A stretch of DNA of 64,000 nt from IMGVR_UViG_3300044796_000662:248001-312000, one strand, 5' to 3'; shown: positions 3,704 through 62,037, numbered from the stretch's first letter. Program-made: numbers and translations. Notes: generated by a model not told the origin, from the letters alone.

Positions 3704-3753
3704 GGGCGAGAGTAGAGAGAGCCTTGCGGCCCCCTCTACACCCGACCTCCCGC

Positions 3754-4620
3754 TCAGACGTTGTCGAGCAGCTCCGTGAAGTCGCCGCCTGCGGCCACGT
3801 CCGAAACGGCACTGCCGCCGGCCGAGCCGAGACCGAGCTTCTCGCGAAGCGTCGGGGTGCTCATCTCGCGGAACGGCACGAGCTTGTCGTAGAAGCCGAC
3901 CGCCTTCTCCAGGACGACCTGCTTGAACTTGTCGCTCTTGAGCCACGTCGCCGGACCGTCTGCGGCCGGCTCGATCTGCTGGTACTTCTCGTCCTTGCAC
4001 TCCAGGAGGAGATCCTGGTTGGCGATGCCGGCGCCGTTGCGCACGAGGCCCATGTTGACCTTCCAGATCAGGTCGTAGCGCTTCGAGCTGAAGCGCCAGG
4101 GCATGATGCGCCAGTTGGCGAAGTTCGCCTTGTCGATCTCACCCTTGCGGTTGGTCGGGTAGATGATCAGGAGCGTCGAGAAGTACGTCTTCGGCGCTTC
4201 CAGCTTCTTCCAGACCTCGTCCTCCTCTGCCGTGCCCTTGCCGAGCCGGGAGAGAACGAAGCCCAGTCCGTCGCCACCGTAGTGAGCGCTGAACTTTTTG
4301 AAGCGGACCTCGGTCAGGTCCAGCTTGTCCACCTGCGTGAGCTGATCGACCGTCTTGCCGAGGGCCGCCGCGCGATCCGCGAGGGCCTTGGCAGCGATCT
4401 TCGCTCGCTCTTCTGCGGGCATGCTCGGGCTCTTCTTCCGAGCCTTCGCGACGGTCGCCACATCCACCGGGTGGAAGTAGATGATGCTGGCGCGGTCCGT
4501 CTTGCCCTTCTGTCCCTTGTACCACTCGATGTCGGAGTCGGACTTTGCCGCCTTCCGGTCTTCCTCATCGAGGCCAAGGTCGCTCTCGTACTCCGAATCC
4601 ATCTCTTCTGTGCTCATCAC
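3754..4620 (-). CDS. Putative single-stranded DNA-binding protein (gp32-like)
   Basis: Recombination context, aromatic/basic core, Gly/Ser linker and acidic tail DFTELLDNV. Confidence 0.5.
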   Translation of the reverse strand: MMSTEEMDSEYESDLGLDEEDRKAAKSDSDIEWYKGQKGKTDRASIIYFHPVDVATVAKARKKSPSMPAEERAKIAAKALADRAAALGKTVDQLTQVDKLDLTEVRFKKFSAHYGGDGLGFVLSRLGKGTAEEDEVWKKLEAPKTYFSTLLIIYPTNRKGEIDKANFANWRIMPWRFSSKRYDLIWKVNMGLVRNGAGIANQDLLLECKDEKYQQIEPAADGPATWLKSDKFKQVVLEKAVGFYDKLVPFREMSTPTLREKLGLGSAGGSAVSDVAAGGDFTELLDNV

Positions 4621-4760
4621 TGTTCTCCGTTGTGGGAAACCCCGAGGCCGACAAGATGCCGATTAGGCTGGGTGGCTCAGAGTGACCAGTTGCGTTGCGG
4701 GGACGTCTGACACGTCAGAACGTCCGGTGGTGTGTCTCTACACCGCTAAGAAGGGCCCAA

Positions 4761-5603
4761 TCACAGATTATCGAAGAGGTCTGTGAAATCGTTGTCCGCG
4801 ACTGCGGACTGCATGGGCATAGCGGGCACGGAGACGGTCACCACGGGCGCGGGCGCACTGGGCTCTTCTGCTGGAACTGCAAGAAAGTCTCTGATTTCAT
4901 CCTCTTCCGAAGCCGGCTCTTTGGGCCCAGCGACGGGGGTAGCAGGAGCAGCCTTCACGGGCTCAGCCTTCTCGATGACGGGCTCCTCCGGAGCACCGTT
5001 CGCCTCCAACATCTTCTCGATGTCGTCCTCGTCGATGCCTTCCGGTCTCGCGTGAACCCCCGGGGTAAACGCAGCCTGCATCGCATCTGCACCGCCACCC
5101 ATGGCGGTCGGCCGCTCGTCGCCGTACATGGCGCCGGTCTCGTGTTCATCGCGAATCAGGCCGCGCTGCGTTTGGATCTCGCGCATCGTGTCCTTCAGCT
5201 CGCGGTGCCGCAGCTTCACGAAGTCCTCGACGTGCTCCAGATCGAGCGCGTCGTTCTTGAGGTTCATGATCTCGCGGTGCTCGTCCTTGAGGATGATGTT
5301 GATCTGCGACTCCCGGTCCTTGATGTTCGGGAGATTGCGGACGATGGGGTTCGTGGCCAAAAGACCGTCAGCCGCGATCTTGAAGGCCGTCTCCTTGCGA
5401 CGCAGCTCGAAGTCGATCTCCATCTTGGATCGCCGCACTTCGTTCAAGAGGAGCACCACTTGATTCGTGTGATTGCGGCACGTGGCGATCATGTCCTGAA
5501 GGTACTTGGGGCCCAACACAGTCGGGTCGTTGGCCAGACGGATCTGGTACTTGTCACACTCCGACATGACCCACTGCATACGGTCGTTCGTCATCCTGGC
5601 CAT
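4761..5603 (-). CDS. Hypothetical coiled-coil protein with acidic tail (possible recombination mediator)
   Basis: Helical N-half, Pro/Ala/Glu linker, tail DFTDLFDNL. Confidence 0.6.
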   Translation of the reverse strand: MARMTNDRMQWVMSECDKYQIRLANDPTVLGPKYLQDMIATCRNHTNQVVLLLNEVRRSKMEIDFELRRKETAFKIAADGLLATNPIVRNLPNIKDRESQINIILKDEHREIMNLKNDALDLEHVEDFVKLRHRELKDTMREIQTQRGLIRDEHETGAMYGDERPTAMGGGADAMQAAFTPGVHARPEGIDEDDIEKMLEANGAPEEPVIEKAEPVKAAPATPVAGPKEPASEEDEIRDFLAVPAEEPSAPAPVVTVSVPAMPMQSAVADNDFTDLFDNL

Positions 5604-5605
5604 CT

Positions 5606-5968
5606 TCAGGCTCCGTTCTTCAAGTGCTTGGCGATCTGCGCGTCGTAGCGGGCGAGGATCCCGAGCGCCTCTTCCTTGGCCTCCGCGGGCGGCAAGATGA
5701 GGCGCTTGACGGCGTCATCGTACGTTGCGGCAACCACATGCTTGCAAAGCAAGCAACGCACGATCTTGAGGTCGTCGATCCCCCAGGAGGCGCCCTCGCC
5801 CACCTGGGATGAACCGTCGTCCCGCGACGCCGTGACAGAGTAGAACGCCGACCGCTTGCCTGCTTCGACGCTGCACGAGACCGTGATGCGGTCGTGGCGG
5901 ATCTCAGTGGTCAGCTTTGACAGGCGTGCTCTCTGGTCGTCCGTCAGCTCCTCGTGCAGGCTCGACAT
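5606..5968 (-). CDS. Hypothetical protein
   Basis: 120 aa ORF, GGTGTA motif 10 nt upstream. Confidence 0.65.
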   Translation of the reverse strand: MSSLHEELTDDQRARLSKLTTEIRHDRITVSCSVEAGKRSAFYSVTASRDDGSSQVGEGASWGIDDLKIVRCLLCKHVVAATYDDAVKRLILPPAEAKEEALGILARYDAQIAKHLKNGA

Positions 5969-8177
5969 GTGCTCTCTCTACACCAGCACGAGCTGCCACC
6001 GCCTCGTTGACTGCTCGGGCGAAGACCGTGTTCCTTTGGATCACACGGTCGTTGCCGATAGCCTTGTGAACTGCCGACTGATCACCGATGAGCCACACCT
6101 TCTTCTTCGCTCGGGTCACGGCCGTGTAGAAGAGGTTGCGCTGAAGCATCCGGCCCTGTGCGCGCACCACGGGCAGGACAACCGTATCGAACTCAGACCC
6201 CTGGGACTTGTGGACCGTGATGCAGTAGGCGAGCCTCAGCATCCCCAAAACCGACGTCTTCGGGATCTCCACCTGCATGTCCGGAGCGGTACCCACGCTG
6301 TGGATGCGGACTGTGAAGTTGTCGCGCCCGATGGTGATGAGTTTCCCCATGTCCCCGTTGGACACGTTCAAGCCGTAGTCGTTCTTGATGACCATGACAC
6401 GGTCACCCTCACGAAAGTGCAGGCTCCCGACCTTGTGCTCCTTCTGCCCGTTGTTCAGAGGGTTGAGCTGCTCGCGAATGGCTTGGTTGAGGTTGTGTAC
6501 CCCCACCGGCCCCTCGTACTTGGGGGATAGCACCTGGAAATTCGCGTCCCGGGACTTGAGCTTGACCGCCATCTGGACGATGAGGTCCACGATGCGATCC
6601 TCGTCCTGTAGGTTGACGAACTGGAACTCCTCGGTTGGCTGACGGCCTTCGAGCTGCGGAGCCTGGCCCTTGTTGATCTTGTGGGCCGCGATGACGATCG
6701 CGCTCTGCTGTGACTGCCGGAAGATGTGCGTCAGACGCACGTGCGGGATACTCGGACACGAGAGCAGCTCACGCAGAACGTTGCCGGGACCGACCGAAGG
6801 GAGCTGCGCGTCATCGCCGACGAGCACGAGCATCGTCTCTGGATGCAGCGCGTCGAGGATGCGATAGAAAAGCTCCTGGTCCACCATGGACATCTCGTCC
6901 ACGATGACCGCCCCGATGCCGAACTTGTTGCGGGAGTTGAACTCCCAGGCGGTGCCCGTCCAGCCGAACGTCCTGTGGATGGTCGATGCCGGCTCCCCAG
7001 TGACCGCTGCAAGGCGTTTGGCTGCGATGCCGGTAGGTGCCATCAAGAGACAGGAAACCCCCGTCTGCTTGAAGAGGCGGACGATGGCACGGATCAGGGT
7101 CGTCTTGCCGGTGCCAGGTAGCCCCGTCAGGGCAAGCACCCGGTTCTCCACGAGCTTGCGTACGGCCTCTCGTTGGGCTTCTGAGAGGTCGATGGTGTTG
7201 CCCTTCTGGTACTGCCCGAGGAACCCTTCCAGGTCGATGTCGAGCTTCGAGGGCGTCACGAACTCGGCCAGCTTACGAGCCCCCTCGCGCTCATACATGT
7301 AGAGGTCCGGCAGGTACACGCCGACCTCGGGATCCACCCGGACAGCCCCACTGTCCACGAGGCGGTTGACCGACGCCATGAGACGGTCATGTAGGTCGGC
7401 CCCCTCGAATCCCTCGGACAGGTCGTTGACGAGCAGGCCCTTGAGCAGATCGCCGAAGGCCCCACGCCGGACGGCCAGATGGCCTTGCTGCGCCTCGGAC
7501 TTGAGGATCCAGAAGACTGCCCCGTCCATCCTGCGAGGGTCGTCCCGACCGATGCCGATACGTGAGGCAAGCTTGTCCGCCTTCGAGAAGACGAACCCGT
7601 CCACGGCCACGAGGCGGTACGGGTTGTCAGAGATGAGCGAGACCGCTTCTGTGCCGAACTTCGTGAAGACGTTCCGAACAACGTCTTCCGAGAGGTCGTA
7701 GTCCTGAAGGAAGATGGACAAGTTGCTCAAGGCGCGAGCCTCAGCCCACCGCAGGAGTGCAGACTCCGCGAGCACCCGCCTGGCCTCAGGGACCACGGCC
7801 ATGACCTCCTCGGGGTTGTCCGTGAGCTTGTCGAAGGTCAGCGTCCCGAAAGCATCAACGATGGACTCGACGAGCTGCTTGTCCTCGAAGCCGGAGACGC
7901 ATTCGTTCAAGAAGCGCTGAACCCCAAAGTCGTGCGTTGCCCAGGGGAACCACCCGTAGAGCGAGAACTGGCGCCCGTACTTCGGATGCCGGATCCAGTC
8001 CCCCACGAACTGCACGGAGATACCCGTCCGGATCTGTTGCAGACCGTAGAGGTGGCCCGTCAACGTGACGGTCTTCTCGTGGACGTGGGGCTCGGCGTGA
8101 TCCACCTCGAAGGCGAAGACGAAGAAGTCGTTGCCCTGATGGATGACCCGCGAGACGTGGCCGAATACGCTCGCCAT
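5904..8177 (-). CDS. recD2: RecD2-like SF1B helicase
   Basis: HPKYGRQF, GLPGTGKT, APTGIAAKRL, VDEMSM, GDDAQLPSVGPG, TVHKSQGSE, YTAVTRAK. Confidence 0.92.
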   Translation of the reverse strand: MASVFGHVSRVIHQGNDFFVFAFEVDHAEPHVHEKTVTLTGHLYGLQQIRTGISVQFVGDWIRHPKYGRQFSLYGWFPWATHDFGVQRFLNECVSGFEDKQLVESIVDAFGTLTFDKLTDNPEEVMAVVPEARRVLAESALLRWAEARALSNLSIFLQDYDLSEDVVRNVFTKFGTEAVSLISDNPYRLVAVDGFVFSKADKLASRIGIGRDDPRRMDGAVFWILKSEAQQGHLAVRRGAFGDLLKGLLVNDLSEGFEGADLHDRLMASVNRLVDSGAVRVDPEVGVYLPDLYMYEREGARKLAEFVTPSKLDIDLEGFLGQYQKGNTIDLSEAQREAVRKLVENRVLALTGLPGTGKTTLIRAIVRLFKQTGVSCLLMAPTGIAAKRLAAVTGEPASTIHRTFGWTGTAWEFNSRNKFGIGAVIVDEMSMVDQELFYRILDALHPETMLVLVGDDAQLPSVGPGNVLRELLSCPSIPHVRLTHIFRQSQQSAIVIAAHKINKGQAPQLEGRQPTEEFQFVNLQDEDRIVDLIVQMAVKLKSRDANFQVLSPKYEGPVGVHNLNQAIREQLNPLNNGQKEHKVGSLHFREGDRVMVIKNDYGLNVSNGDMGKLITIGRDNFTVRIHSVGTAPDMQVEIPKTSVLGMLRLAYCITVHKSQGSEFDTVVLPVVRAQGRMLQRNLFYTAVTRAKKKVWLIGDQSAVHKAIGNDRVIQRNTVFARAVNEAVAARAGVERAHVEPARGADGRPESTPVKADH

Positions 8178-8178: not shown

Positions 8179-10068
8179 TCAGCCCGCCGCCATCTTGACG
8201 AAGTCGCTCTCCGAGATGGTCACCGTGCCGTGCTTCTTGGCTGCCTGCGCTTTCGTGCTCGCGGAGTTGGGATCGGCCATGACCAGATACGTGAGCCCCG
8301 CGCCCACGGAGCCCTTCACGGTCCCGCCGGCGTTGCGGACCATGTCTTCCAGGTCCGCCCTCTTGTGCTCGGACTTGCCCGTGAAGCAGAAGCTCTTGCC
8401 AGTCAGGCCACCCCTCACACGGTCCTTGAGCTTGAGCCCCGTCGAGAGGGTGTCCTTGACGACGTCCTTGCCGTGGGTCGAGAACCAATCGGAGAGCGTC
8501 TTCGATCGAACCGGCCCGAGGCCCTTGATGGCCATGAGTTGCTCAGTGCGAACGGCCAGGAGCTTCTCCACCGTATCGTAGCCGGCATCGACGATGAGCC
8601 GGATCATGGACTCCCCGCAACCCGGAATGGATAGCGCTCCGAAGAACGACTCGATCGGCAAGGGGTTCTTGGCCCAGAGCGTCTTCAGGAGGTTCTGCGC
8701 AGACTTCTCCCCCATGCGGTCGATGTCCGCGAGGTTGAGCTTCTCCAGCCTGTAGAGGTCCGCCACGTTCTTGACCATCCCTGCGGCCACGAGGCGCTCC
8801 ATGACCGCCTCGCCCCATTCGAGGATGTTGAGGGATTTGACGTACCGGATCAGACGGCCAAGCGTCTGCGCGGGACAATCGGCGGTGTCCGTGCAGACGA
8901 GGTACTCGCCGTCCCAATCGGTGGGCGCTCCGCACGACGGGCACTTCGAGGGTGGCTCTGCGACCGAGCCAGTTCCTTCCACGACTTCCGTGACCCTCGG
9001 GATCACGTCGTTGGCCCGTGCTACGAGGATGCGGGCTCCGACGTTGAGCTTGAGGTCCCGAATGTACTTCCAGTTGTACAGGCTCGCCCGCGTGACCTTC
9101 GTACCGAGGAGGTTCACCTCGTCGAAGATGGCCACGGGAGTGATGTGCCCAGCGCCGCCAGTCTGATTGTCGATCTGGCGAAGGGTAGACTCCCTAGAAG
9201 GAGCTGCGAACTTGAAGGCCCGTGCGCCGTTGGGGCAACCACTGCTCTCGCCCATGGCCTCCTGCTTGGCCACGTCGTTGATCTCGACCACCAGACCGTC
9301 GATCGCGTAGTCCAGCTTGTCGCGGGTGGTCTTCTGATACTCCTCCCAGATGGGCTCGGGATCGAGAGTCACGGAGCTGTTGGGTGTCTTGAACCCCAGC
9401 TTGCGGATCCAGGAAAGCTGCGCGCTCCGCGTCGGCAGGTTGTCCGCCCCCTCTGCGACCCGGTAGACGAGCACCGTCAGATGCTCGCTGCCCGTGCCAT
9501 CCAGACGGCTTGCGATACCGCTCGCCGTGTTGCGAGGGTTCGCGTATTCGGGGAAGTTCTTGGCGAGGGAGCTGAGGGTGCAGATGATCTCCCCTCGGAA
9601 CTGAGCCGTGATGTCCTTGGGAAGCTTTGCCGGCACGCCTGCCATCTTGGCGACGTTGCGGGTGATGTCCTCACCCTCCTGGCCATCACCGCGGGTGACA
9701 CCCTGAGTGAAGACCCCGTTCTCGTAGCGCAGGGCAACCGAGATACCGTCGAGTTTCTCGGTCACGAACAGCTCGCCCGTGTTGTTGTCCTTGATCCACT
9801 TGGCCATCTCGAAGGGGAAGTTGACCTTGTCCAGAGACCCCATGGGGATCTCGTGGGCGACTTTCTTCCACTCGGACTTGACCGCCGCACCTACGCCCGT
9901 GACCTGGGGGCTCTTGGGGCGTAGGCCGCGCAGCTCGTCTACCCACGCGTCGAAGGTCGCATCCGAGACCTTCGGCTTGTGCTTGACGTAGTAGTCCTCC
10001 CGGGCAGCGGAGATGAGCTTCTCCAACTCATCGGCCCTGGCCTCGTCCAGATCTTCGGGGTCGAGCAT
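8179..10068 (-). CDS. ligA: NAD-dependent DNA ligase
   Basis: EKLDG, TRGDG, RGE, NPRN, Zn finger, HhH, C-terminal BRCT (GKSFCFTG). Confidence 0.95.
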   Translation of the reverse strand: MLDPEDLDEARADELEKLISAAREDYYVKHKPKVSDATFDAWVDELRGLRPKSPQVTGVGAAVKSEWKKVAHEIPMGSLDKVNFPFEMAKWIKDNNTGELFVTEKLDGISVALRYENGVFTQGVTRGDGQEGEDITRNVAKMAGVPAKLPKDITAQFRGEIICTLSSLAKNFPEYANPRNTASGIASRLDGTGSEHLTVLVYRVAEGADNLPTRSAQLSWIRKLGFKTPNSSVTLDPEPIWEEYQKTTRDKLDYAIDGLVVEINDVAKQEAMGESSGCPNGARAFKFAAPSRESTLRQIDNQTGGAGHITPVAIFDEVNLLGTKVTRASLYNWKYIRDLKLNVGARILVARANDVIPRVTEVVEGTGSVAEPPSKCPSCGAPTDWDGEYLVCTDTADCPAQTLGRLIRYVKSLNILEWGEAVMERLVAAGMVKNVADLYRLEKLNLADIDRMGEKSAQNLLKTLWAKNPLPIESFFGALSIPGCGESMIRLIVDAGYDTVEKLLAVRTEQLMAIKGLGPVRSKTLSDWFSTHGKDVVKDTLSTGLKLKDRVRGGLTGKSFCFTGKSEHKRADLEDMVRNAGGTVKGSVGAGLTYLVMADPNSASTKAQAAKKHGTVTISESDFVKMAAG

Positions 10069-10091
10069 GGCCGACCCCTACACCGAAAGTG

Positions 10092-12316: not shown

Positions 12317-13318
12317 TCATTGCCCAGCGATCGACAAGACCGCCAGCTCCACGAGCGTTCTCTTTGAACGCGACGGGCCCTTCACATCCGCATCTAGTCT
12401 GCACAGGCGAGTCATGAGACTCGCCAGCGTCTTCTCGTCATGCTTGCGTGCGTTCGGCAGAAGCGTGTCTCTACACCAGATGAAGGGCACGCCCAGCACA
12501 CCCGCGATGTCTTTCACGGGCATGTCCGACTTCAAGAGATGCTTCGCTACGATGGTCTTCTGTAGCTCACGCATCAACCCAGAGACGATAGGCACTGAGG
12601 CTTCCTCGCCCATGGTCCTGTAGACGCGCGACAAGGAGTTCATCGCCTCTTTTTGGTTCCGCGCAAAGGCTGCGCTCGCAACATCCCACGGCTCCGTCTT
12701 CGACGTGTTCGTGGTGATGAGCGCCAAGTGTTTGATCGTCACTTTGCCGCTGTTGCCAACGAGCAGGTGAAGCTTCCTCAGCTCGTTGCGGATCGCGTAG
12801 AGGTTGCCGCCCGTCAACTGGAAGAGCTGGCGATCCACGTCCTTGTCAAGGACGAGTCCCAAGCTGATCGCGTGCTTCGGGATGAAGTCCTTGATGACCT
12901 CGTTGTTGCTCTCGTAGGTCTTGAGCTTCTGCCGCTCTCGCAGCTTGCCCTTGGCCGCCAAGTGCGACCACATCTCGGGGAGCTTGCTGCCGCGCACGAT
13001 AGCGACGAGCACAACGCGTAGATCGCTCACGCTCTTGCTATCGGCGTACTCGCGGAGAGGCTTGCTCTTGCCCTTGCTCTCCTTGACCTTCTGCGCTTCT
13101 TCCACGATGACCGTCCGAGGGGAGTCGTCCTCGTTGGGCATCTCCAGGATCTTCACGAGGTCGTTGTCATCGAGAGCCTCGATGCTCGCGTCGATGACCA
13201 TGGGTACCCGTCCACCCCAAGTGCGAGCGAGTCCGAGATCCTGATCGAGGTAGTAGTCCTCTTCTCCGTACGAGACGAAAAAGGGCACGTTGGGGCCGGA
13301 GGTCACCTTCGCCGCCAT
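12317..13318 (-). CDS. holA: DNA polymerase III delta subunit-like
   Basis: YGEEDY, GGNLYAIRNELRKL, DADVKG; adjacent to holB. Confidence 0.75.
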   Translation of the reverse strand: MAAKVTSGPNVPFFVSYGEEDYYLDQDLGLARTWGGRVPMVIDASIEALDDNDLVKILEMPNEDDSPRTVIVEEAQKVKESKGKSKPLREYADSKSVSDLRVVLVAIVRGSKLPEMWSHLAAKGKLRERQKLKTYESNNEVIKDFIPKHAISLGLVLDKDVDRQLFQLTGGNLYAIRNELRKLHLLVGNSGKVTIKHLALITTNTSKTEPWDVASAAFARNQKEAMNSLSRVYRTMGEEASVPIVSGLMRELQKTIVAKHLLKSDMPVKDIAGVLGVPFIWCRDTLLPNARKHDEKTLASLMTRLCRLDADVKGPSRSKRTLVELAVLSIAGQ

Positions 13319-15978: not shown

Positions 15979-17655
<1,677 letters not shown>

Positions 17656-17668
17656 CTACACCGAAGCC

Positions 17669-21082: not shown

Positions 21083-21102
21083 GGCCCACTAGTACACCAT
21101 AG

Positions 21103-21279: not shown

Positions 21280-21381
21280 AGTGCATCGGGAGGCGTACCT
21301 CCCGGAAGTTTCCTACCGTTGGGTCTCGATAAGAACTCCTTCTGCTTCTCGTCGCGGTTTCAAGGACCGCCGCAACAATCG

Positions 21382-25492: not shown

Positions 25493-25515
25493 GTTCATCC
25501 TCATCTGGGTTGTAG

Positions 25516-41418: not shown

Positions 41419-41434
41419 AGTGACTGGTACACCG

Positions 41435-43519: not shown

Positions 43520-43644
43520 AGACGGGTGAAGGAGTCGAACCTTCCAAGCTTGTAGACGCACGTGGCGGCTCCCTTGCGGGAGCGAGAGTGAGCGTCGGAT
43601 GTATCTCTTATGAGGAGAAGCGGGACCCACGTCCCTTACCCGTC
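43520..43644 (-). ncRNA. tRNA-module chimera B (anticodon CAT)
   Basis: Acceptor GACGGGT/ACCCGTC, loop CTCATAA, CTC-GCTCCC-GCAA-GGGAGC...TACAAGC. Confidence 0.75.
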
Positions 43645-48399: not shown

Positions 48400-48520
48400 C
48401 TTCGATCCGATCTCGGCCCCCGCACATGGGGCCGCGTCGCTACATACACCGCTCGGTGTGCGGACCCCCAGATTGAGGGTCGAGTTTCCGAACGGTGGTT
48501 GAGCGCGACGATGCGCTCGG

Positions 48521-48593: not shown

Positions 48594-48595
48594 AG

Positions 48596-48669
48596 TCGGG
48601 GTGACAGGACTCGAACCTGCGAAAAACGTGCACCCAAAGCACGCGCACTAGCCGCTATGCGACACCCCG
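48596..48669 (-). tRNA. tRNA-Pro(TGG)
   Basis: Loop TTTGGGT. Confidence 0.9.
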
Positions 48670-48694
48670 AAGTACCTATCGACCCCCTTACACC

Positions 48695-49718: not shown

Positions 49719-49994
49719 TTACTCGTTCGCGAGCCGTGCCAGGACATGTCCATGACACGCTTTCGGGTCGCACCAGCAACCCAAAACCTTGCCTCGGAGG
49801 ACCCGCTTCGCCATCGCCACGAGGGCGGGCTGCGTCTTGATCCACTCCGTGTACCGCGCGATGGCCTCTTCGCGCGTCTCGACCTTGTACTTAGCCTTCG
49901 TGCCCTCCTTGTGCGAGAAGGGGTTGCCCCAGATCGTCGTGCGGTCGATGAGCACGTCGTAGGGCTCGCGCTTGCAGTGGACGACGAGCTTCAC
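49719..49994 (-). CDS. DUF4326-like protein
   Basis: VVHCK..YDVLIDR..WGNPF...LRGKVLGCWC.PKACHG. Confidence 0.8.
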   Translation of the reverse strand: MKLVVHCKREPYDVLIDRTTIWGNPFSHKEGTKAKYKVETREEAIARYTEWIKTQPALVAMAKRVLRGKVLGCWCDPKACHGHVLARLANE

Positions 49995-50980
49995 TCCGCA
50001 GCGACGTCCGCGGTGCGGTCCTTGGCTGTCAGGCTCAGAATCTTGCACGTCACCGCTGAACGCGTCCGATTCATCTGAGCGGCGATCACCCCACGGTCGA
50101 TGCCCTCTGCATGGAGCTGCGCAAGCTTCTGGAGGTCCACTTCTGTCCAGGGGTTCGCTTCACGCCGCTGAAGCGACGAGGCGATGCGATCAATGTCCAG
50201 GCGTTTGACGCCCCAACGACCGTGCGGAATGCCGAGCCTCTTCAAGTGCACCGTGAGGGTCTTCGGCTTGTAACCGAGGCGCTCAGCGGCGGACCGGATG
50301 GTCTCGTTGACCTGTGAGCGCTTGGCCTTGGCTTCCGCGCTCTTCTTGATGGCGTCGTCGATGTCCTTCGAGGGGATGCGCCAGACCGCGTGCTTCTTGG
50401 CCGGCGGCTGAAGCCCGCTCTCGATGAGCTGCGACTTCAACGTGTCCACGCACATGCCGCGCCGGCAAGCTGCGTCGAAGAGGGTCTCCGAGTCGCACCA
50501 TACGGACACGGCGTAGTCCACGTCCCCCGGCCGTACGATGAACACGTGGTACTTGGCCTTGCGTTCGACGAGGGAGTAGCTCGGCGAGGGCTTGATGCCC
50601 GCGTGCGCCAAGATGTTCTTCAAGGTCTCGACCATGTAGCCCGTGCGCTTTGCCGCATGGGCCATGCGCTCCCAACCGTTTGGGCAGCCGACCTTCAAGC
50701 CAAGAGTGTGCTTCGCGTACTGGTAGACGCCCGCCTTCGTGCGGTCAAGCAACTTGGCGATACGGTCAAGAGGCTCGGCGCCCCACAAGACCCGAAGACG
50801 ATCCGCCTCTTCCTGCGACCAGTGCGAGCGCTTGGTCAGACCAAGCTTGCGGGCCATCTGGTAGATGCTGCGCCTCGAACGATGAGGCAACGCCTTCTTG
50901 ATAGCCCTGTAACCCCGGCGGTACTTGAACTTGCTCTGGAGGAGTGTCTTCTCCTCCTCGGTCCAGAACGTGTAGGCCAT
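49991..50980 (-). CDS. Multi-HTH/Myb-like DNA-binding protein
   Basis: Repeated WT/SxEE...L...IA..L.RT..V units. Confidence 0.7.
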   Translation of the reverse strand: MAYTFWTEEEKTLLQSKFKYRRGYRAIKKALPHRSRRSIYQMARKLGLTKRSHWSQEEADRLRVLWGAEPLDRIAKLLDRTKAGVYQYAKHTLGLKVGCPNGWERMAHAAKRTGYMVETLKNILAHAGIKPSPSYSLVERKAKYHVFIVRPGDVDYAVSVWCDSETLFDAACRRGMCVDTLKSQLIESGLQPPAKKHAVWRIPSKDIDDAIKKSAEAKAKRSQVNETIRSAAERLGYKPKTLTVHLKRLGIPHGRWGVKRLDIDRIASSLQRREANPWTEVDLQKLAQLHAEGIDRGVIAAQMNRTRSAVTCKILSLTAKDRTADVAAE

Positions 50981-51002
50981 CGACTAGAAGCCGTACACCA
51001 TG

Positions 51003-51514: not shown

Positions 51515-52018
51515 TCAGGTTGTCGGTGGCTCCTCGGGAGGAGGCAACGACAGCGTGTGAACTTGCTCTACCGGAACCCCGAGCATCGCTGCGATCTGCT
51601 CTCGTTCGCTCTGACCCACGGCGGGCTCGGCCACCTTGGGCGGCTCCTCTTCCTCCCACTTGATGTCCCCGGTCTCGTTGACCTTGACGATGCAGGCCCA
51701 GCATCCCCGCATGTCCTTGTCGAAGATGTAGCCGGGCGCTTCAGTCGAGTGCGTGTGCAGCTTGCGCCAGGCTTCCCACTGCCCGCCCGCCTCAACCATC
51801 TCGTGGTGGTCGAAGCCGTCGATGCCCTTGAGCAGGAAGCGGTTGTTCATGCCGAGGATACGGGCGAAGTCCCTGTTCTTCGCCTTGACGCGCACCGTAC
51901 CAGCGCGGGGGTCAAGCCACCGTGCCTGCGTGTTGCCGCAGCGGCAGACCGTCCAACCGCACTCGGGGTCAAGGGCTCGGATGTCGAGGCACTTCGCGCA
52001 GAGCAGAGCTTTCGTCAT
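51515..52018 (-). CDS. Hypothetical Zn-binding protein
   Basis: CAKC...CRCG; GGTGTA 10 nt upstream. Confidence 0.65.
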   Translation of the reverse strand: MTKALLCAKCLDIRALDPECGWTVCRCGNTQARWLDPRAGTVRVKAKNRDFARILGMNNRFLLKGIDGFDHHEMVEAGGQWEAWRKLHTHSTEAPGYIFDKDMRGCWACIVKVNETGDIKWEEEEPPKVAEPAVGQSEREQIAAMLGVPVEQVHTLSLPPPEEPPTT

Positions 52019-52035
52019 GCCCTCGCTCTACACCA

Positions 52036-52485
52036 AAAGCGGAACCCCGGAGAGTAGCCTTCCCCGGGGTCCCTTTGTGCGACTTGCGCCGCTCGTCTTT
52101 TTAGGGTGACCACTGGCGTTTAAGGTCGGCAGTGAGTCCTGAGCCTCTAGTGTCCTGTCGCTAGACGACCGCCCTGTAGGTGTTGCGTAGCTGCGCGAGG
52201 CAGCAGCAGGGTGGGCGGGATTCAAACCCGCGTCCTAGAGAATTGTTGCCTTCCGTTCGATTGGCCTCCCGACGATGTTGCTGAGTCTGGAGTAGTAGTC
52301 TCAGGCTGAGCCGCGCTACGGGTTGCGTCTGCCAATTTCGCCACCCCCGTGTTGTCAGGTCCAGCCTTTACGGCCGGGCCTTGCACCCTGCGGTGCAGTA
52401 CGGGGGGAAGGATTCGAACCTTCAGCTTTCGCCGTCGCGCTAGATGAGTCTGAATCTGAGTCTGAGCTTGAACTCCACTCTTGTC
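52036..52485 (-). ncRNA. ~450-nt RNA with two tandem permuted tRNA-like domains
   Basis: Two T arm > acceptor > D arm units, (A/G)CTCAG repeats, own GGTGTA at 52487-52492, terminal hairpin plus T tract. Confidence 0.72.
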
Positions 52486-52499
52486 TTACACCGCCGAGG

Positions 52500-53252
52500 T
52501 CACGGCGCGAAGACGAAATCGAAGATGGGCTTGCCGGCGGACAGATCCTTCGGCACGTCGTGGCTGTTGGCGGTCTCCTTGGCCTGCTTGACCGCGTGCT
52601 GGAGCTTCTCGATCCGAGCGAGCAGGAGATCCTTCTGGTCCATCGGCATCGCCCCGGAATACTTGATGGTCTTCCAGGTGCCGGTGATCTTGTCCTCCGT
52701 AATGAGCTGGACCTGCGCCGGGTGCTCCTTCGAGCCCGGGTGCATCACGAGAGGCACCTGGAGCTTCTTCGTGCGGACCGTCTCGGTCGGCTGCGTCGCG
52801 TAGAGGCTCTGCTCCTTGTCGAGCGTCCACTTCTCGGCCGGGTCGAGCGTCGGCATCTTCTTGACCTCCGTGTAGAGGTCGTCGAGCTGGTGCCCGAGCC
52901 AGAGCAGGTACGTGACCGGGGCATCCTTCAGGATCGTCTTGCCCTCCACGACCACGTCCGCCTTCGCGGAGCAGTTCGTGACGTCGCGCTGGAAGGTCAT
53001 GTCGAACAGCTCGGTCTGCTCCTTCTGAATGGTCTTCAGGAGGACGGCCGTGTTCTGCTGGACGTTCTGGCGCTCGTCCGGCAGCATCTCGTGCAGGTTC
53101 GACTCCGGGTTCGCGTCGCGAGCCGACCACGTCTTCACGTGGCCGCTGAAAAGCGCCGGCTTCTGGAACGTGTGGTAGATGGCGGTCAGCTTCTCGGCCA
53201 CCTTCGTCTTGAGGCCCGACTCGATGGCAAGAACGTGATGCAGCTTCGACAT
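52500..53252 (-). CDS. Uncharacterised coiled-coil protein
   Basis: MSKLHHVLAIE...TNCSAKADVVVEG...LLARIEKLQHAVKQAKETAN. Confidence 0.8.
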   Translation of the reverse strand: MSKLHHVLAIESGLKTKVAEKLTAIYHTFQKPALFSGHVKTWSARDANPESNLHEMLPDERQNVQQNTAVLLKTIQKEQTELFDMTFQRDVTNCSAKADVVVEGKTILKDAPVTYLLWLGHQLDDLYTEVKKMPTLDPAEKWTLDKEQSLYATQPTETVRTKKLQVPLVMHPGSKEHPAQVQLITEDKITGTWKTIKYSGAMPMDQKDLLLARIEKLQHAVKQAKETANSHDVPKDLSAGKPIFDFVFAP

Positions 53253-53325
53253 GGTGGTCTCCGATCCGATTTGGGTCTGTGGGTCAGTAGTACACCGGAC
53301 CCCCACCCCTTCAGGACCGTCAACG

Positions 53326-53448: not shown

Positions 53449-53847
53449 ATGTCCGTCCTGCTCCGGTTGCCCCTCTACATCGAGCCCGCCCTTGCACTCG
53501 TTCCCACGCCGACCCCCGAGCCGGCCGAGGAAGACCTCACGTGGCCCGAGGGTGAGGAACCCGTGCGGCCAAGGACCCGCGGCGAGTGCGAGGATGCCCC
53601 GCGCCCGTGCCCGTGGGTCTCGTGCAAGCAGCACCTCTTCTGGGAATACCTGAAGCACCATCCGGAGGCGACGGTCGAAACGATGAAGCACTCGTGCGTG
53701 CTGGACATCGCCGACGAGGGCGGCATGACCCTGGAAGATGTCGGCGAGATCTTCGGGCTCACCCGAGAGCGCATCCGACAGCTCGAAACCGATGCCCTGC
53801 GGAAGCTCAAGAAGCGCCCGCAGTTGATGCAGTACCGGGCCGAGTAG
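53449..53847 (+). CDS. Sigma70 region-4 HTH protein with Cys cluster
   Basis: RPCPWVSCKQHL...TLEDVGEIFGLTRERIRQLE..ALRKL. Confidence 0.82.
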   Translation: MSVLLRLPLYIEPALALVPTPTPEPAEEDLTWPEGEEPVRPRTRGECEDAPRPCPWVSCKQHLFWEYLKHHPEATVETMKHSCVLDIADEGGMTLEDVGEIFGLTRERIRQLETDALRKLKKRPQLMQYRAE

Positions 53848-57520: not shown

Positions 57521-60331
57521 CTACTCGGGCAGGTCGGCCATCTCGTCGAAGAGGTCCTTCTGACTGCGCTCTGCTTCGGCCTGCGCGTGCTTCGTCAATA
57601 CACGCTTGGACGCGATGTCGTGGAAGTGCTCGTCCTTCTCGATGCCGACGAAGGACAGGCCCGCCTCGGTCGCAGCCGCGCACGTCGTCCCTGATCCGCA
57701 GTAAGGGTCGAGCACGATGCCATCCTTGGGGGTCACGAGGCGCACGAGAAAGCTCATGAGCGCAATGGGCTTGACCGTGGGATGGTCGTTGCCGCCCGCC
57801 ATGTCGTCCACCTCGAAGTGCTCCCGCAGGCTCTCCGGGATGATCCGCTCGAAGATGGTCGCCTCCAAGCTCTCTGTCTCCGGGTCGAAGGAGCCGAGCA
57901 CCTCCGTGACCGTCTCCTGGATGCGCATGGTGACGTCTGTATCGACGCCCTCCTTGATCTTGAAGTAGACGAGCTTGGGCTGGTTTTTGGACTTCGTCTT
58001 CGGCGGCTTGGGCTTCTCGAACGCGCTGTTGCGCTCCGACCTCGACGCCTTCGCCGAGTAGTAGAATGGTGCCTCCGGGACGAACTGACCGAAGAAGCGG
58101 CTCGCTCCGCCCGAGTCCCCGTAGTGGAACGGCAGGTGCTCGCCCTTCGACCAGGACGCACCCGCAGCGTCACTCGTGGCCCTCGGCTGTACATACGGAC
58201 CGCGACCATCGACGCGACCGCTCTGCTCGTCCATCGCCTTGACCGGGCACCCCTCGACGCACTCGAAGACCGCGACCTCTTCGTTGCCCTCTGTGTCGCC
58301 CGTCTGCGTGCTCGTGAAAGGGTGGCGTGCGCCACCCCCGAACGGCTTCATACCGTCGTCGAAGCGGTTGATGACGGGCGCCGGGACCTTCTTCGTGCCG
58401 ACCTTCTCGCAGCCCGCTGCGTGGACCATGACCACGTTCGCGGGCCAGCGGCCGCCTTCCTTGACGTCGTTGGCACCCGAGAGGTCGGACGAGTTCTTCC
58501 AGGAGTTGCCGAGCTTGCCGCCCTTGGCCTTGAGCGCGGCCACCATCGCCTTGTGGGCTTCGAGATCTGCGGCGTTGGCGTGCTTGATGCGCGTGCCGTC
58601 GATGTTCAGACCGCCCGTGCCGGTCGTGACCACCTGCTCCGCGATGGACGACTCCTCGACCGGCTTGCGGAAACAGAGGACAGGCTCCCATGCGGGCTTG
58701 AGGGCGGTGCCCCACCCGTCCCACTTCTTGGCCAGCTCCGCGATCTCTGCTCGACGGCGCTCCACCTCGTCTTCCGACAAGCCTTCCGCGATTTCGAGCT
58801 TCGCGATGGCCTTGCCGATGTTGAGGCTCTTGGGGAAGCCCTGCCCATGAACCCACTGGAGCACGCTGGGCCCGAACATCGTCGCCACCGTGTCGCGGTT
58901 CTCGAAGCCTGCGGCCCGGATGCCGATCGACATGATGTCCCATGTGCGGGTATTCCCACACCACACGGCCTTGCCGTTGCGTCGAACGTAGAGAGTATGG
59001 TGCCTCTCCAGCTCGACGCAGTAGACCGTCCGTCCCTGCCACTCTTCCGCCGGGACAAGGGTGCGAACGGGATTCTTCAAGCCGGATCGGTCATAAACCT
59101 CAGGCTGGTTCTGTACATGGTTAAACGTCACCGCGTAGGACGGTCGCCGCGCATGAATCTCGCGCCCGTTGATCTTCGGGACACGCTTCTTGGGCTTCGT
59201 AACCACCCAGTCGGCAGAGATCCCCATGTACATCGCAACCTCTTGCCAATCGTCCCGAAGGCGACTGGAGGTTGTGTACCCCACACGGTGGTCGTGACCG
59301 TCACCGCGCATGTACCAATCCCACAGAACCTTCAGACGAGAGGAAGGCAGGGTCTTGATCCAGTCGGGAATAAACTTCTCCCAAGACTTGCCGAACTGGC
59401 GCAAGTACAGGGTGAGCTGCTTGTCATTGATACGGAGCTTCCCGATGCTCTCGTAGACCTTCACGTCGAACCAGTCCGACAGACGACGCTGTACTTCTCG
59501 AAGATTCTCGGTGTCGAAGTGTGCGATCGAGACGTTGTACCCGAATCCCTGTTCGTGGCCATCTCGCGGCTTGTTCTTGACGATGCTGGCGCTTCCTTCG
59601 GCCAGATACAACCCAAAAAAAGGCAGCCAAGCGTCAAGTGGGATCACCTTCTCCGGTAGCTCGACTTGATGCCCGTGACTCGTCGTCTGCATGACGGCTG
59701 GCAGTTTGAAAGAGTCAGGGTTCTGGAGGTCCATCCGCCCCCGACTCGTCTTGGTCATCTTGATCGCTCGCCCATGTTCGTCTGCCCTGACGAGGCTGAA
59801 CTTGGCAGGTGAGCCGAGCGTAGCGACAAACATGTTGTGGTTTGGCGTGACCAGCAGATCGACCTTGTTGGTCTTGTACCGCACCATCTCGCCAGGATTC
59901 GGCTGACGGACAACTTCCTTAGCCCGCTGCCAACCCACCTTGTGGGTCTCCGGGTCTAGGGACGCAAACTCTTCGTCCCCGGTCACGTCAGGGAAGCGGA
60001 CCCAGCCCTTGCGCGTGAGCACCTCCGTGTGCTCGTCGTAGCACCCCGCGAACGCCAAGAGGTGCCCACCTGGCTTCAGGATGCGGTAACACTCCTGCCA
60101 GACGGCGACGGGCGGGATCTCCCACTCCTTGCCCATGAAGTCACCCCCAGTGTCGAGGCGCTCGCCCTTGAGATAGTGCGCGATGTCTTCGCCCGTTGGC
60201 TCGCGATTGCCGATGCCATAGGGGGGATCCGTGACGACGCTGTCCATACAGGCGTCCGGCATCGTCTTGAGGACTTCCAGGCAGTCGCCGTTGAGGATCC
60301 GATTCCGGAACGCCGCGTCGAGGGTCTTCAC
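57521..60331 (-). CDS. N6/N4 DNA methyltransferase (beta order) with intein
   Basis: VTDPPYG, HPTVKP, VLDPYCGSGTT, GIE. Confidence 0.9.
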   Translation of the reverse strand: MKTLDAAFRNRILNGDCLEVLKTMPDACMDSVVTDPPYGIGNREPTGEDIAHYLKGERLDTGGDFMGKEWEIPPVAVWQECYRILKPGGHLLAFAGCYDEHTEVLTRKGWVRFPDVTGDEEFASLDPETHKVGWQRAKEVVRQPNPGEMVRYKTNKVDLLVTPNHNMFVATLGSPAKFSLVRADEHGRAIKMTKTSRGRMDLQNPDSFKLPAVMQTTSHGHQVELPEKVIPLDAWLPFFGLYLAEGSASIVKNKPRDGHEQGFGYNVSIAHFDTENLREVQRRLSDWFDVKVYESIGKLRINDKQLTLYLRQFGKSWEKFIPDWIKTLPSSRLKVLWDWYMRGDGHDHRVGYTTSSRLRDDWQEVAMYMGISADWVVTKPKKRVPKINGREIHARRPSYAVTFNHVQNQPEVYDRSGLKNPVRTLVPAEEWQGRTVYCVELERHHTLYVRRNGKAVWCGNTRTWDIMSIGIRAAGFENRDTVATMFGPSVLQWVHGQGFPKSLNIGKAIAKLEIAEGLSEDEVERRRAEIAELAKKWDGWGTALKPAWEPVLCFRKPVEESSIAEQVVTTGTGGLNIDGTRIKHANAADLEAHKAMVAALKAKGGKLGNSWKNSSDLSGANDVKEGGRWPANVVMVHAAGCEKVGTKKVPAPVINRFDDGMKPFGGGARHPFTSTQTGDTEGNEEVAVFECVEGCPVKAMDEQSGRVDGRGPYVQPRATSDAAGASWSKGEHLPFHYGDSGGASRFFGQFVPEAPFYYSAKASRSERNSAFEKPKPPKTKSKNQPKLVYFKIKEGVDTDVTMRIQETVTEVLGSFDPETESLEATIFERIIPESLREHFEVDDMAGGNDHPTVKPIALMSFLVRLVTPKDGIVLDPYCGSGTTCAAATEAGLSFVGIEKDEHFHDIASKRVLTKHAQAEAERSQKDLFDEMADLPE
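58952..60043 (-). mobile_element. Intein with LAGLIDADG homing endonuclease (364 aa)
   Basis: AG|CYDEHTEVLT...TPNH...GLYLAEGS...MRGDG...VYC...WCGN|T. Confidence 0.9.
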
Positions 60332-60339
60332 GCCCGCCC

Positions 60340-61101
60340 TTACACCGCCGATACGACCTCTGACCCGAGCAACCCGTTGGGCGCAAGGGGATCCAAAACT
60401 TTTCCTCCAAGGGGACTGACGAGCCGAAGAAGCCAGTCCACAAGCTCTGTCTCAGTCATGAACTGCGGGATGAATCTACCAGCCGCACCGTCATCCGCAT
60501 GCAAGCCCCCCTCGACCCTGGAACCCATGACACCCGCTGCCTTGCTCTGACGCTCCAGGAAAGGCAAGGGGCACTCTGCCGTGCAGTCTATCACCGGGAT
60601 CTCGACCCCGTGCTGCTTCTTCACACCACGGTGGACGCACCCTGCCGTATGCCGGATGAGCATGTTCGTGGGCCAACGGCCGAGTTGGTTGGGTGGGGGT
60701 GGGGCCACAAGCTTCGGAAGGTCCCCTTTCGTATCGAACCGTCTATACTCTCGCACGGTAGTGGGTGCTGGGACGACGCCCTGGATGCGTACACGGTCGA
60801 TGTTGTAGGCCCCGGTATCTGTAGCAAGAACCTGTTCGAGAGCGCTGGATCCCGACAGGGGCTTACGAAAGACAAGAATGGGCACCCACCGCAGGCCCCC
60901 ATCGAAGTAAAGAATAGTGTCGCGGTTCTCGAACCCTGCTCCGCGCAGAGCTATGGACGTATCAACCCAGGAGCCGTCAGCGATAACGAGCACGGGCGAA
61001 CCAGGCTTCAATACCCGCCAACTCGGCCCCGCATCAAACGGACGGCCACACCTAGTGATGAGAGCGTGTGCACTCGTGGGGGGTAGACTGGCGATGCGCA
61101 C
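60340..61101 (-). CDS. Degenerate methyltransferase paralog
   Basis: Shares VLKPG, AGFENRDT, FRKP, GRWP.N, VLDP with its neighbour but lacks DPPY and GSG. Confidence 0.65.
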   Translation of the reverse strand: MRIASLPPTSAHALITRCGRPFDAGPSWRVLKPGSPVLVIADGSWVDTSIALRGAGFENRDTILYFDGGLRWVPILVFRKPLSGSSALEQVLATDTGAYNIDRVRIQGVVPAPTTVREYRRFDTKGDLPKLVAPPPPNQLGRWPTNMLIRHTAGCVHRGVKKQHGVEIPVIDCTAECPLPFLERQSKAAGVMGSRVEGGLHADDGAAGRFIPQFMTETELVDWLLRLVSPLGGKVLDPLAPNGLLGSEVVSAV

Positions 61102-61110
61102 AAGCGCTGA

Positions 61111-62037
61111 TTACACCGGGCCGTTCTTCTTGTACCACTCCGGCCCCTTCTTGAGGACACCCTTCTCACCGCGGAGTCGCGGGGACATCTTCTCCGGATC
61201 CCCAAGATACTCCGGGGCATGCCGCTGGAAAACGCGCAGGATCTTTGGCAGAATTCTGTAACCCCAGAGCTGTGGGACGGCCTTGTAGTGCGGGAGCATG
61301 GACGGGAGATCCTTCCTGGGGTCCCCCAGGATCTCATTCGACGTGTACCCTTGCATGAGCAGGTCCAACCACAACGGAGCATCAGGATGTGCGCCAGTCT
61401 CCAGTTCCCGTTTGATATGGGGGTCGTTCCAGATGTGCCCCCTTCCTTCAAGCATATGGCGAAGGGCCTTCGGGTCATCCGGAGTGAAGAGGGGTGTTCC
61501 CTCCTCGTCCGTCCTGTCAATACTGATGTCTCTGTGCTGGCGCTTGTCGCCACGAAGTTGGTTGATGGTGGCGTTCTCCAAGCTACGGAGCACGAAGCTA
61601 CGTGCCTCCGTAAGAGAGATACCAGACCGCATCTGCTCCCACTTGTTATCCAGGATGAACGTGAAGAGCCACGCGCTAATCGCGCGGTCTACAGCATCAT
61701 CATTGTGATACTTGCGGTGCAGAAGTTCCTGAAGGCTCTCGGCGAAACCTTCGAGGTAGTTCGGGGGCAGGAACCGCGAAGGATCCTTGCCCTCGGCTCG
61801 AAGCTGCTTGACGGGGAAGTCAAGGGCCGGACCCGCGTACTTACCCGAGGAGATGTCGGGGAGCCCGTGCACCTCCTTCTCGATGAAGACGACCCCCAAC
61901 GTGCGGCCGAGAGACCGTACGTCGGTCCCGGCAAGGATCGAAAACACGTACGCCAGGCGCACGCTTGGGGGTAGAGACGCAAAAAGCGCGCGACCAAGGA
62001 AGGCCGCGCGCTTCTGGAGTGCCGAGATCTTGACCAT
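61111..62037 (-). CDS. Sigma-factor-like protein
   Basis: SFVLRSLENATINQLR..KR...ISID (region 2-like); QGYTSNEI (region 4-like). Confidence 0.45.
   Translation of the reverse strand: MVKISALQKRAAFLGRALFASLPPSVRLAYVFSILAGTDVRSLGRTLGVVFIEKEVHGLPDISSGKYAGPALDFPVKQLRAEGKDPSRFLPPNYLEGFAESLQELLHRKYHNDDAVDRAISAWLFTFILDNKWEQMRSGISLTEARSFVLRSLENATINQLRGDKRQHRDISIDRTDEEGTPLFTPDDPKALRHMLEGRGHIWNDPHIKRELETGAHPDAPLWLDLLMQGYTSNEILGDPRKDLPSMLPHYKAVPQLWGYRILPKILRVFQRHAPEYLGDPEKMSPRLRGEKGVLKKGPEWYKKNGPV

Follow-up and report, generated by a model that had tools for sequence, protein, structure and literature searches.

GGTGTA as the probable core of a promoter class tied to leaderless mRNAs in a clade of huge phages

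Background

So far the promoters of uncultivated huge phages have been essentially unknown. A survey of huge phages mentions sigma factors and transfer-messenger RNAs (tmRNAs), and neither promoters nor leaderless mRNAs (PMC7162821). Here we analyze the hexamer GGTGTA in a 64,000-nt stretch of DNA (the window), which comprises bases 248001-312000 of the 362,937-bp huge-phage record IMGVR_UViG_3300044796_000662 of IMG/VR. An earlier note on the window had proposed that GGTGTA, lying 9-11 nt from start codons, generally without a Shine-Dalgarno (SD) sequence and without an evident -35 element, is a promoter consisting of a -10 element only, which is read by a phage sigma factor and whose transcripts begin on the start codon. 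Our analysis suggests that the hexamer is probably the core of one promoter class, used by this phage and by a whole clade of huge phages.

Results

The source of the window is a huge phage, whose genome (G000 below) has a uniform GC content of 62.6%, contains no N, is estimated by CheckV to be 76% complete, and carries the large terminase at 229-231 kb and the portal at 225-227 kb. Genes were called genome-wide with a home-made codon-usage score, which gave 382 genes and a coding share of 89%. In the window there are 51 tRNA genes (the phage as a whole has 52 tRNAs), a tmRNA, an RNase P RNA, and genes for a very divergent GroEL (15979-17628, minus strand), an NAD-dependent ligase, a RecD2-type helicase, a class II ribonucleotide reductase and a 936-aa DNA methylase. 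Nearly all window genes lie on the minus strand, so that TACACC on the plus strand is GGTGTA on the gene strand. Coordinates below are window positions unless given as genome positions, and copies of the motif are on the minus strand unless stated otherwise.

Every coordinate listed in the earlier note does carry TACACC on the plus strand, and the twelve copies it had placed 9-11 nt from a start codon are so placed, with a spacing of ten nucleotides in eight cases, nine in three (28391, 41428 and 60341) and eleven in one (39599). The 10-nt spacing precedes the ATG of a 120-aa open reading frame (ORF) at 5606-5968 (motif 5979-5984, within the 3' end of the RecD2-like gene), of the NAD-dependent DNA ligase at 8179-10068 (10079-10084; kept in the orthologue of relative G003), of a 203-aa ORF at 20471-21082 (21093-21098, immediately downstream of tRNA-Ser), of a 269-aa ORF at 25938-26747 (26758-26763, immediately downstream of tRNA-Leu), of a 243-aa ORF at 32435-33166 (33177-33182), of a 209-aa ORF at 33185-33814 (33825-33830, immediately downstream of tRNA-Gly) and of a 167-aa ORF at 51515-52018 (52029-52034, with a strong terminator-like hairpin and T-run directly upstream), as well as the GTG of a 253-aa ORF at 60340-61101 (61112-61117). 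In the last case the upstream ORF 61111-62037 ends on a stop codon made up of the TA of the motif and the A after it. The 9-nt spacing is found before the ATG of a 115-aa ORF at 28034-28381 (28391-28396), the ATG of a 181-aa ORF at 40873-41418 (41428-41433; kept in the orthologue of relative G001) and the GTG of the 936-aa DNA methylase at 57521-60331 (60341-60346); the 11-nt spacing, before the GTG of a 74-aa ORF at 39363-39587 (39599-39604). For the 181-aa ORF the start at 41418 is forced, because a longer frame would cross tRNA-Arg (41435-41510). A thirteenth copy (50994-50999), immediately downstream of tRNA-Pro, lies 13 nt before the ATG of a 329-aa ORF at 49991-50980.

Further copies precede stable RNAs and genes with longer leaders, among them, as the earlier note had it, the tmRNA, groEL and a VWA-domain gene. 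Copy 25915-25920 lies 15 nt before the mature 5' end of the tmRNA (25513-25899, minus strand; tag ANDNGVAQARAA), where transcription from about 10 nt past the motif would yield a precursor with a 4-5-nt leader that RNase P has to trim, and copy 48689-48694 lies 19 nt before tRNA-Pro 48595-48669, the first of a tRNA-Pro/tRNA-His pair. The copy before groEL (17657-17662, 28 nt ahead of the ATG at 17628) is leadered and not leaderless, because the leader holds AGGAGG. SD-bearing leaders likewise follow 27610-27615 (GGAGAG, with ATG 19 or 25 nt on; ORF 27075-27590), 34740-34745 (AGGAGGG, with the ATG of a short ORF 26 nt on), 48445-48450 (about 45 nt before the VWA-domain gene 46504-48399/48648) and 53291-53296 (GGAG, 38 nt before the ATG of a 250-aa ORF at 52500-53252). 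The intergenic copy at 3737-3742 (GGTGTAGAG) has a leader of more than 30 nt, and similar long-leader or possibly non-coding copies start at 4739, 14409, 23372, 42671 and 52487. The only plausible copy on the plus strand (63190-63195) is intergenic and points towards the plus-strand ORF 63236/63254-63898, divergently from a sigma-like gene described below.

Several features beside these copies deserve mention. A perfect hairpin follows copy 4739. The stretches 52035-52486 and 23177-23371 (minus strand), downstream of copies 52487 and 23372, contain no convincing ORF and no Rfam match, and may be non-coding RNAs or long leaders. A copy at 12472-12477 (minus strand), with T before and GAGA after the hexamer, lies within the 3' end of ORF 12317-13318 and 168 nt ahead of the gene for the class II ribonucleotide reductase. 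This copy could serve as an internal promoter whose transcript has a long leader, and no riboswitch near it reached the Rfam threshold. The RNase P RNA (40010-40374, minus strand; bacterial class A, full-length, 299.5 bits) stands beside tRNA genes and could mature the phage's own tRNA and tmRNA precursors. The phage GroEL is about 47% identical to the bacterial GroELs returned by a pattern-based genome search, whose matches reflect the peptide patterns used. Regarding the host, a protein atlas lookup gave only clusters of mixed phyla and the GroEL matches were likewise uninformative; megablast found no close record among deposited phages.

Both the number and the placement of the copies depart strongly from expectation. 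TACACC occurs 40 times in the window (34 on the plus strand and 6 on the minus strand) versus 11.32 expected (standard deviation 3.07), and none of 100 shuffles reached 40. Genome-wide, counting both strands, there are 160 copies of GGTGTA, of which 94 are fully intergenic versus 15.5 expected, a six-fold enrichment; 87 of these 94 face a co-directional downstream feature, at a distance of 9-11 nt (47 copies), 12-13 nt (7) or more (32). An ATG exactly 10 nt after GGTGTA was found 31 times versus 1.9 expected, and a start codon 8-12 nt downstream 51 times versus a median of 5 across 60 permutations of the hexamer. When every hexamer was scored at each offset of 0-30 before every ATG, GGTGTA at offset 10 ranked second in G000, and the only hexamer above it was the -35-like one of a different promoter class. 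Of the functional copies, about half have a start codon 9-11 nt downstream, and leadered or non-coding RNAs lie downstream of about a third of those that look functional.

That mere chance, base composition or codon usage produced the pattern is an explanation we consider practically negligible. It does account for copies inside genes, which follow codons: TAC-ACC in frame on the opposite strand makes up 30 of 37 antisense copies, and sense copies read GGT-GTA or G-GTG-TA. Seven of the 34 gene-strand copies in the window look like chance occurrences, lying inside ORFs or a tRNA (14484, 18816, 23565, 39409, 45539, 62921 and perhaps 12472). It is opposed by the shuffles, the intergenic enrichment and the permutations, which gave nothing comparable, and by conservation among orthologues that are only 33-55% identical (see below).

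A weight matrix built from 64 sites aligned on the motif consists of C (46) or T (14) at the position before it, the invariant GGTGTA, and then a purine-rich nRRG. No -35 element is present in these sites, every column from -50 to -2 carrying at most 0.19 bit, which bears out the corresponding point of the earlier note. One-mismatch variants at the right spacing are not enriched (6 versus 2-4 at control offsets). The linked start codons are ATG in 51 genes, GTG in 9 and TTG in 1. Forty-six of these 61 genes lack a match of at least 4 nt to AAGGAGG, in line with the proposed general lack of an SD, compared with 85% of random positions and 56% of other genes; the few matches in motif genes stem from the purine run of the motif itself. 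The linked start is the first possible one in its frame for 41 of the 61 genes and not the first for 20, and in the 10-nt spacing the TA together with a following G or A often makes an in-frame stop just upstream of the start.

Six divergent gene pairs carry back-to-back motifs (TACACC, a short spacer, GGTGTA), with the opposed starts 34 to about 80 bp apart: genome 4233/4236 (34 bp between starts), 12210/12227, 17359/17410, 20198/20201, 56235/56240 and 94647/94654. Such intergenic regions must contain two promoters, and the motifs are the sole conserved elements there. Because copies also precede the tmRNA, tRNAs and SD-bearing leaders, the signal appears to be transcriptional and not translational. 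A hairpin with a T-run lay just upstream of 10 of the 94 intergenic sites versus 36 of 321 controls, so coupling to terminators is not systematic; clear cases in the window are 52029 and 34218.

These observations also bear on the idea that the motif acts in RNA, either as a nuclease processing site that yields leaderless mRNAs or as an unusual ribosome-binding signal. In favour of it, GGTG can pair with part of the anti-SD region, many copies sit between genes of the same direction, where one would expect read-through RNA, and the spacer is purine-rich. Nevertheless the idea is very improbable in our view: copies stand before the untranslated tmRNA and tRNAs, promoters are required where the motifs stand back to back between divergent genes, and, in contrast to SD sequences, the motif does not tolerate one-mismatch variants. 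As an SD or other ribosome-binding signal in particular the motif was rejected, since only GGTG could pair, at 12 nt from the start, too far for that part of the SD, and the invariant TA would be left unpaired (the 16S complement reads GGUGAU).

Relatives sought through the ligase and the large terminase were exclusively huge IMG/VR contigs of 150-530 kb, with terminase identities of 55-70%. GGTGTA-N10-RTG exceeded its reversed-pattern control in all 20 relatives, for example 78 versus 10 in G002, 63 versus 7 in G006, 66 versus 7 in G007, 45 versus 10 in G011 and 33 versus 8 in G003. Two relatives were taken whole, G001 (286 kb, 57% GC) and G003 (398 kb, complete, 48% GC). In G001, 18 copies are followed by a start codon after 9-11 nt (permutation median, 3); in G003, the two top hexamer-by-offset signals of the genome are those of GGTGTA at offsets 10 and 9, with 26 copies versus 3.2 expected at offset 10. 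Among the G000 motif genes, the motif stands 8-13 nt before the aligned start of the orthologue in 7 of 13 cases in G001 and 9 of 13 in G003, compared with 1 of 114 and 4 of 112 for genes without the motif (Fisher, 1.5e-7 and 2.9e-8), and the orthologous proteins that keep the motif are only 33-55% identical. Conservation between orthologues, together with enrichment at 48-57% GC, thus argues for an element that is under selection, specific to a class of genes and independent of base composition.

The geometry suggests where transcription would start. If +1 is the A of the ATG, the A-N10-ATG spacing puts the A of the motif at -11 and GGTG at -16 to -13, in the extended -10 zone. Position -11 is the canonical place of the flipped-out adenine in -10 elements of the sigma-70 type. 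In bacteria rich in leaderless genes, TANNNT-N6-ATG likewise has the A of its TA at -11 (PMC12340547). Promoters of phiEco32 gp36 (tAATGTAtA) start 6-8 bp past the element, or 8-10 nt beyond the A of TGTA (PMC8948821), a distance that fits a start at or just before the codon in G000. Weak backing for the same +1 comes from the leadered copies: of the 43 intergenic copies that have no start codon 9-11 nt on, 17 carry A as the 11th base (binomial p = 0.003, with no correction for the 18 positions). On this geometry, +1 would lie at the start codon. As a canonical housekeeping -10 of sigma-70 (TATAAT/TANNNT) the motif was rejected: a T four bases after the A is present in only 6 of 64 sites, and since the -7 T is not conserved the motif is not classed with such elements.

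What the earlier note had missed is that GGTGTA is one of three promoter-like classes and is common to the whole huge-phage clade. The second class is bipartite, GTTGATTC-N11-GGGTTGTAGT-N6-ATG, and has about 16 copies in G000, some of them in divergent pairs and none in the window. They lie at genome 2.5, 51.8, 58.8, 78.7, 79.4 (a divergent pair), 80.1, 119.6, 317.1, 320.1, 320.6, 353.2, 357.5, 358.4 and 359.3 (a pair) kb, including the intervals 2488-2530, 79445-79510, 320099-320600 and 359261-359380. Read as TTGATT-16-TGTAGT-6-ATG, this class has exactly the canonical sigma-70 geometry with +1 on the A of the ATG. Its counterpart in G001 is TTGAATC-N12/13-sGTGTTC-N7-ATG, and the -35 hexamer is 28 nt from the ATG in both phages. 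A +1 on the ATG for this class too, in both G000 and G001, would make the leaderless design general in the clade. The third class, YTYTTAT (e.g. TTCTTATG), has 19 genome copies, 18 of them intergenic versus 1.8 expected, mostly in the one-directional structural block at 120-245 kb (the bulk at genome 128-238 kb) and 25-45 nt before an SD and ATG. Window copies lie at 21329-21335, 28010-28016 and 39054-39060 on the minus strand and at 30832-30838 and 43605-43611 on the plus strand. YTYTTAT is a candidate late promoter class with leaders; any temporal order of the three classes would be a guess from gene content.

As to the polymerase, no Pfam match to beta, beta' or a T7-type enzyme was found in G000, although very divergent enzymes could escape such a search. 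In five complete relatives there was no Pfam match to beta' (Rpb1 domain 2). A motif scan found no catalytic DxDGD-type motif in large proteins, and nothing relevant came from Pfam scans of seven proteins of 1179-1520 aa. Because no phage polymerase was found, the host core enzyme is probably used.

That core enzyme would be needed in any case, which lends some weight to a second explanation, that the element is read by a host sigma factor, housekeeping or alternative, whose consensus the phage copies, the phage sigma-like protein serving another class. Leaderless genes with a -10 element adjacent to the ORF are moreover normal for hosts of some phyla (PMC12340547). We judge this unlikely. The hexamer is invariant at 48, 57 and 63% GC, whereas the -10 part of the bipartite class differs between phages (TGTAGT versus TGTTCY), and the near-zero tolerance of GGTGTA for mismatches is unlike host promoters. 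To our knowledge GGTGTA is not a recognised target of any known bacterial sigma consensus, and a literature search found no paper tying it to a phage promoter.

The earlier note had supposed a sigma-like protein, and a divergent one is indeed encoded in the window and found across the clade. A Pfam Sigma70_r2 search of the complete relatives gave weak matches, one of them over the cut-off, in ORFs of 330-420 aa that are mutually homologous; their window orthologue is the open frame 62065-63120 (minus strand), whose likely start is the ATG at 63066, giving a 333-aa protein (62065-63066). Positions 1-37 of Sigma70_r2 match five orthologues (one with 25 bits, over the cut-off), and the window protein itself matches weakly. 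The family has regions 2.1-2.2 at the N-terminus, a variable insertion of about 100 aa or more, ECF-like regions 2.3-2.4 and a putative C-terminal helix-turn-helix (HTH) of the LuxR type, and its nearly invariant block, F..YLARSVHNIYANWCRTRDRRYKE, lies after the insertion and before this HTH. NCBIfam recognises residues 205-232 as ECF-type sigma region 2.3-2.4 (E = 3e-4). The LuxR/GerE-type HTH reached an E of only about 0.01-0.5, and the structural matches of residues 261-333 are non-sigma proteins. In some relatives the insertion, between regions 2.2 and 2.3, contains CxxC pairs and weak HNH-endonuclease matches (L152:1339-2589, L156:523-1677, L153:619-1686); that of the window protein is shorter and has no CxxC or HNH features.

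In structural comparisons, an AlphaFold model of this protein (mean pLDDT 70.8) matched almost exclusively sigma domain 2 in an exhaustive VIA-align search (Z 5-7.7, 77-96 residues aligned): SigB (Z 7.7, root-mean-square deviation 3.5, 89 residues), SigI6 (7.0), AlgU (6.8) and T4 gp55 (6.2), and also pro-sigma-K, sigma-28, sigma-E region 2, SigC and residues 374-446 of E. coli sigma-70 (Z 5.4). The conserved helix 205-227, where conservation within the family is highest, aligns with the -10-recognition helix. Taken together, these matches, whose scores are individually modest, indicate that the predicted product contains sigma domain 2 (regions 2.1-2.4).

Orthologues of the sigma-like protein occur in 17 of the 20 relatives, including all 5 complete genomes, and the motif in 20 of 20. 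GGTGTA precedes neither the window gene nor any of 16 orthologous sigma-like genes; TTGACA-type elements precede several of the 16, and no sigma-70 consensus promoter was found before the window gene. The absence of GGTGTA, with TTGACA in several, fits a factor that is made first and then activates GGTGTA promoters. On such circumstantial grounds the protein encoded at 62065-63066 is the most likely candidate for reading GGTGTA.

Two other sigma-related proteins were found. A 211-aa protein (genome 237736-238371, minus strand; L028:17736-18371) has a sigma-4-type HTH and a second HTH, and is unusually conserved for a small phage DNA-binding protein. A 132-aa protein (53449-53847, plus strand) matches RpoD region 4.2 in NCBIfam with its last 40 residues, as a stand-alone sigma region 4; its homologue in G001 is 52% identical, none was found in G003, and it may mimic or compete with region 4 of the host sigma. 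The motif might be read by a phage DNA-binding protein other than the sigma-like one, with the 211-aa protein as the leading candidate, as an activator or partner in a split sigma, perhaps helped by the 132-aa mimic, which would dislodge region 4 of the host sigma. The identity of the 211-aa protein (71% in G001 and 67% in G003, where the large terminase has about 60%) would match an invariant DNA target, and its sigma-4 part passes the NCBIfam sigma70-ECF cut-off. T4 offers a precedent, its sigma being split between gp55 and gp33. On the other hand, -16 to -11 is the site of sigma domains 2 and 3, not of sigma-4 or of classical activators, and the gene lies in the structural block with an SD and is thus probably expressed late. 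We hold this alternative to be quite unlikely.

Discussion

The reading we prefer is that one promoter class of this phage and its clade has YGGTGTA, followed by a weak run of purines (nRRG), as its only core element, read via a phage-specified factor; we would give it a probability of roughly 0.6. As far as analysis of sequences can reach, the interpretation of the earlier note is supported in every part; the promoter role of the motif, its exact +1 and the protein that reads it are what we infer. Mechanistically, the bacterial RNA polymerase carrying the phage-specified factor would recognise YGGTGTA in the -10 or extended -10 position and begin on the A or G of the start codon, so that within the motif TA would occupy -12/-11 and GGTG -16 to -13. 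A start codon 9-11 nt downstream would then make the mRNA leaderless, or leave a leader of at most about 3 nt, with no need of an SD. The remaining copies would drive the tmRNA, tRNA clusters and SD-bearing leaders such as that of groEL, and the specificity factor would most likely be the divergent sigma-like protein at 62065-63066 (minus strand).

Several points weigh against this reading: i) GGTGTA is sparse in the structural block, where few copies lie; ii) a T at -7, required by group-1 sigma factors, is lacking; iii) transcription may instead begin 1-3 nt ahead of the codon, and in the bipartite class the TGTA core is 2 nt nearer the ATG; iv) no -35 element is seen although the sigma-like protein seems to end in an HTH; v) Foldseek found no significant match for the sigma-like model in PDB, and its VIA-align Z scores (7.7 at most) are in a range that the tool rates as middling; and vi) the better-conserved 211-aa sigma-4-like protein is an alternative reader.

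A bolder version, which we hold tentatively and with the odds leaning against it, is that the clade (290-530 kb, 48-63% GC) reprogrammes the host polymerase by a sigma factor in parts, which reads YGGTGTA and thereby yields dozens of leaderless mRNAs. It would be made up of a domain-2 protein into which a large segment is inserted, of a sigma-4-like protein that is separate and highly conserved, and of a stand-alone mimic of RpoD region 4.2, which could displace the host sigma from the flap. If so, the phage would have, together with its 52 tRNAs, its tmRNA and its RNase P RNA, an expression channel largely apart from host promoters and from SD-dependent initiation.

In practical terms, a single short motif allows transcription units, true start codons and a gene class to be predicted in at least 21 huge-phage genomes, and settles the annotation of start codons for dozens of genes. 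The analysis also points to a previously unannotated sigma-like family, which lies below Pfam thresholds and is absent from PHROGs. Moreover it suggests that leaderless initiation is a programmed, clade-wide strategy of these phages. Such a strategy has a bearing on host range, because the host must be good at translating leaderless mRNA, and on the separation of phage from host expression.

Comparison with known systems

The motif is not a promoter of the kind used by phiKZ- or AR9-type polymerases. The late consensus of AR9 is AACA-N6-TA/G, with leaders of 26-491 nt (PMC5312081).

The -10 element of Deinococcus-Thermus and Actinobacteria hosts (TANNNT; PMC12340547) resembles that of G000 in having the A of its TA 10 nt before the start, no SD and a strict spacing. 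It differs in being degenerate, in its conserved final T and in often having a -35 element; G000 has an invariant GGTG before the TA and no final T. For the Thermus phages phiYS40 and Lalka27a, a preprint reports that most transcripts begin on the A or G of the start codon with a -10 element directly upstream, and that a class-specific variant of it (TAGGGT) is read as a sign of a phage factor that alters polymerase specificity (bioRxiv 10.64898/2026.04.20.719267). As described there, these phages are like G000, as we read it, in a start at the codon and a class-specific -10 element directly upstream; they are unlike it in that the -10 is of the TANNNT type and read by the host sigma A, that the phages are smaller and that their starts were mapped experimentally, the G000 element lacking the -7 T.

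T4 late promoters (TATAAATA at -10; read with gp55, gp33 and the gp45 clamp) likewise consist of a -10 element only. Their reader is a very divergent sigma of the domain-2 kind, and gp55 (PDB 7d7d chain F) matches the model of the sigma-like protein (Z 6.2); in both phages there are separate small proteins with sigma-4-like roles. In contrast to GGTGTA, the T4 late element is AT-rich, and T4 late mRNAs have leaders with an SD. Since the motif is sparse in the structural block, the GGTGTA class is also probably not a late one, unlike T4 late promoters.

Together with T4 late promoters and the leaderless transcripts of Thermus phages, the middle/late promoters of phiEco32, read by gp36 (PMC8948821, PMC12276001), are the nearest known counterparts. 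There are differences: the TGTA core is flanked by TAA before and TA after it in phiEco32 and preceded by YGG in G000; phiEco32 transcripts are not described as leaderless in the cited paper; gp36 is reported to have no region 4, and the G000 protein has a large insertion in domain 2 and a putative C-terminal HTH; and phiEco32 is a 77-kb podovirus, unrelated in host and phage type to a clade of 290-530 kb huge phages. On the other hand, both have a single short conserved element in the -10 position with a common TGTA core and no -35, and a start at a fixed distance (8-10 nt after the A of TGTA in phiEco32; 9-11 nt to the start codon in G000). The proposed reader would be alike as well, namely the host core polymerase with a divergent phage sigma made earlier in infection.

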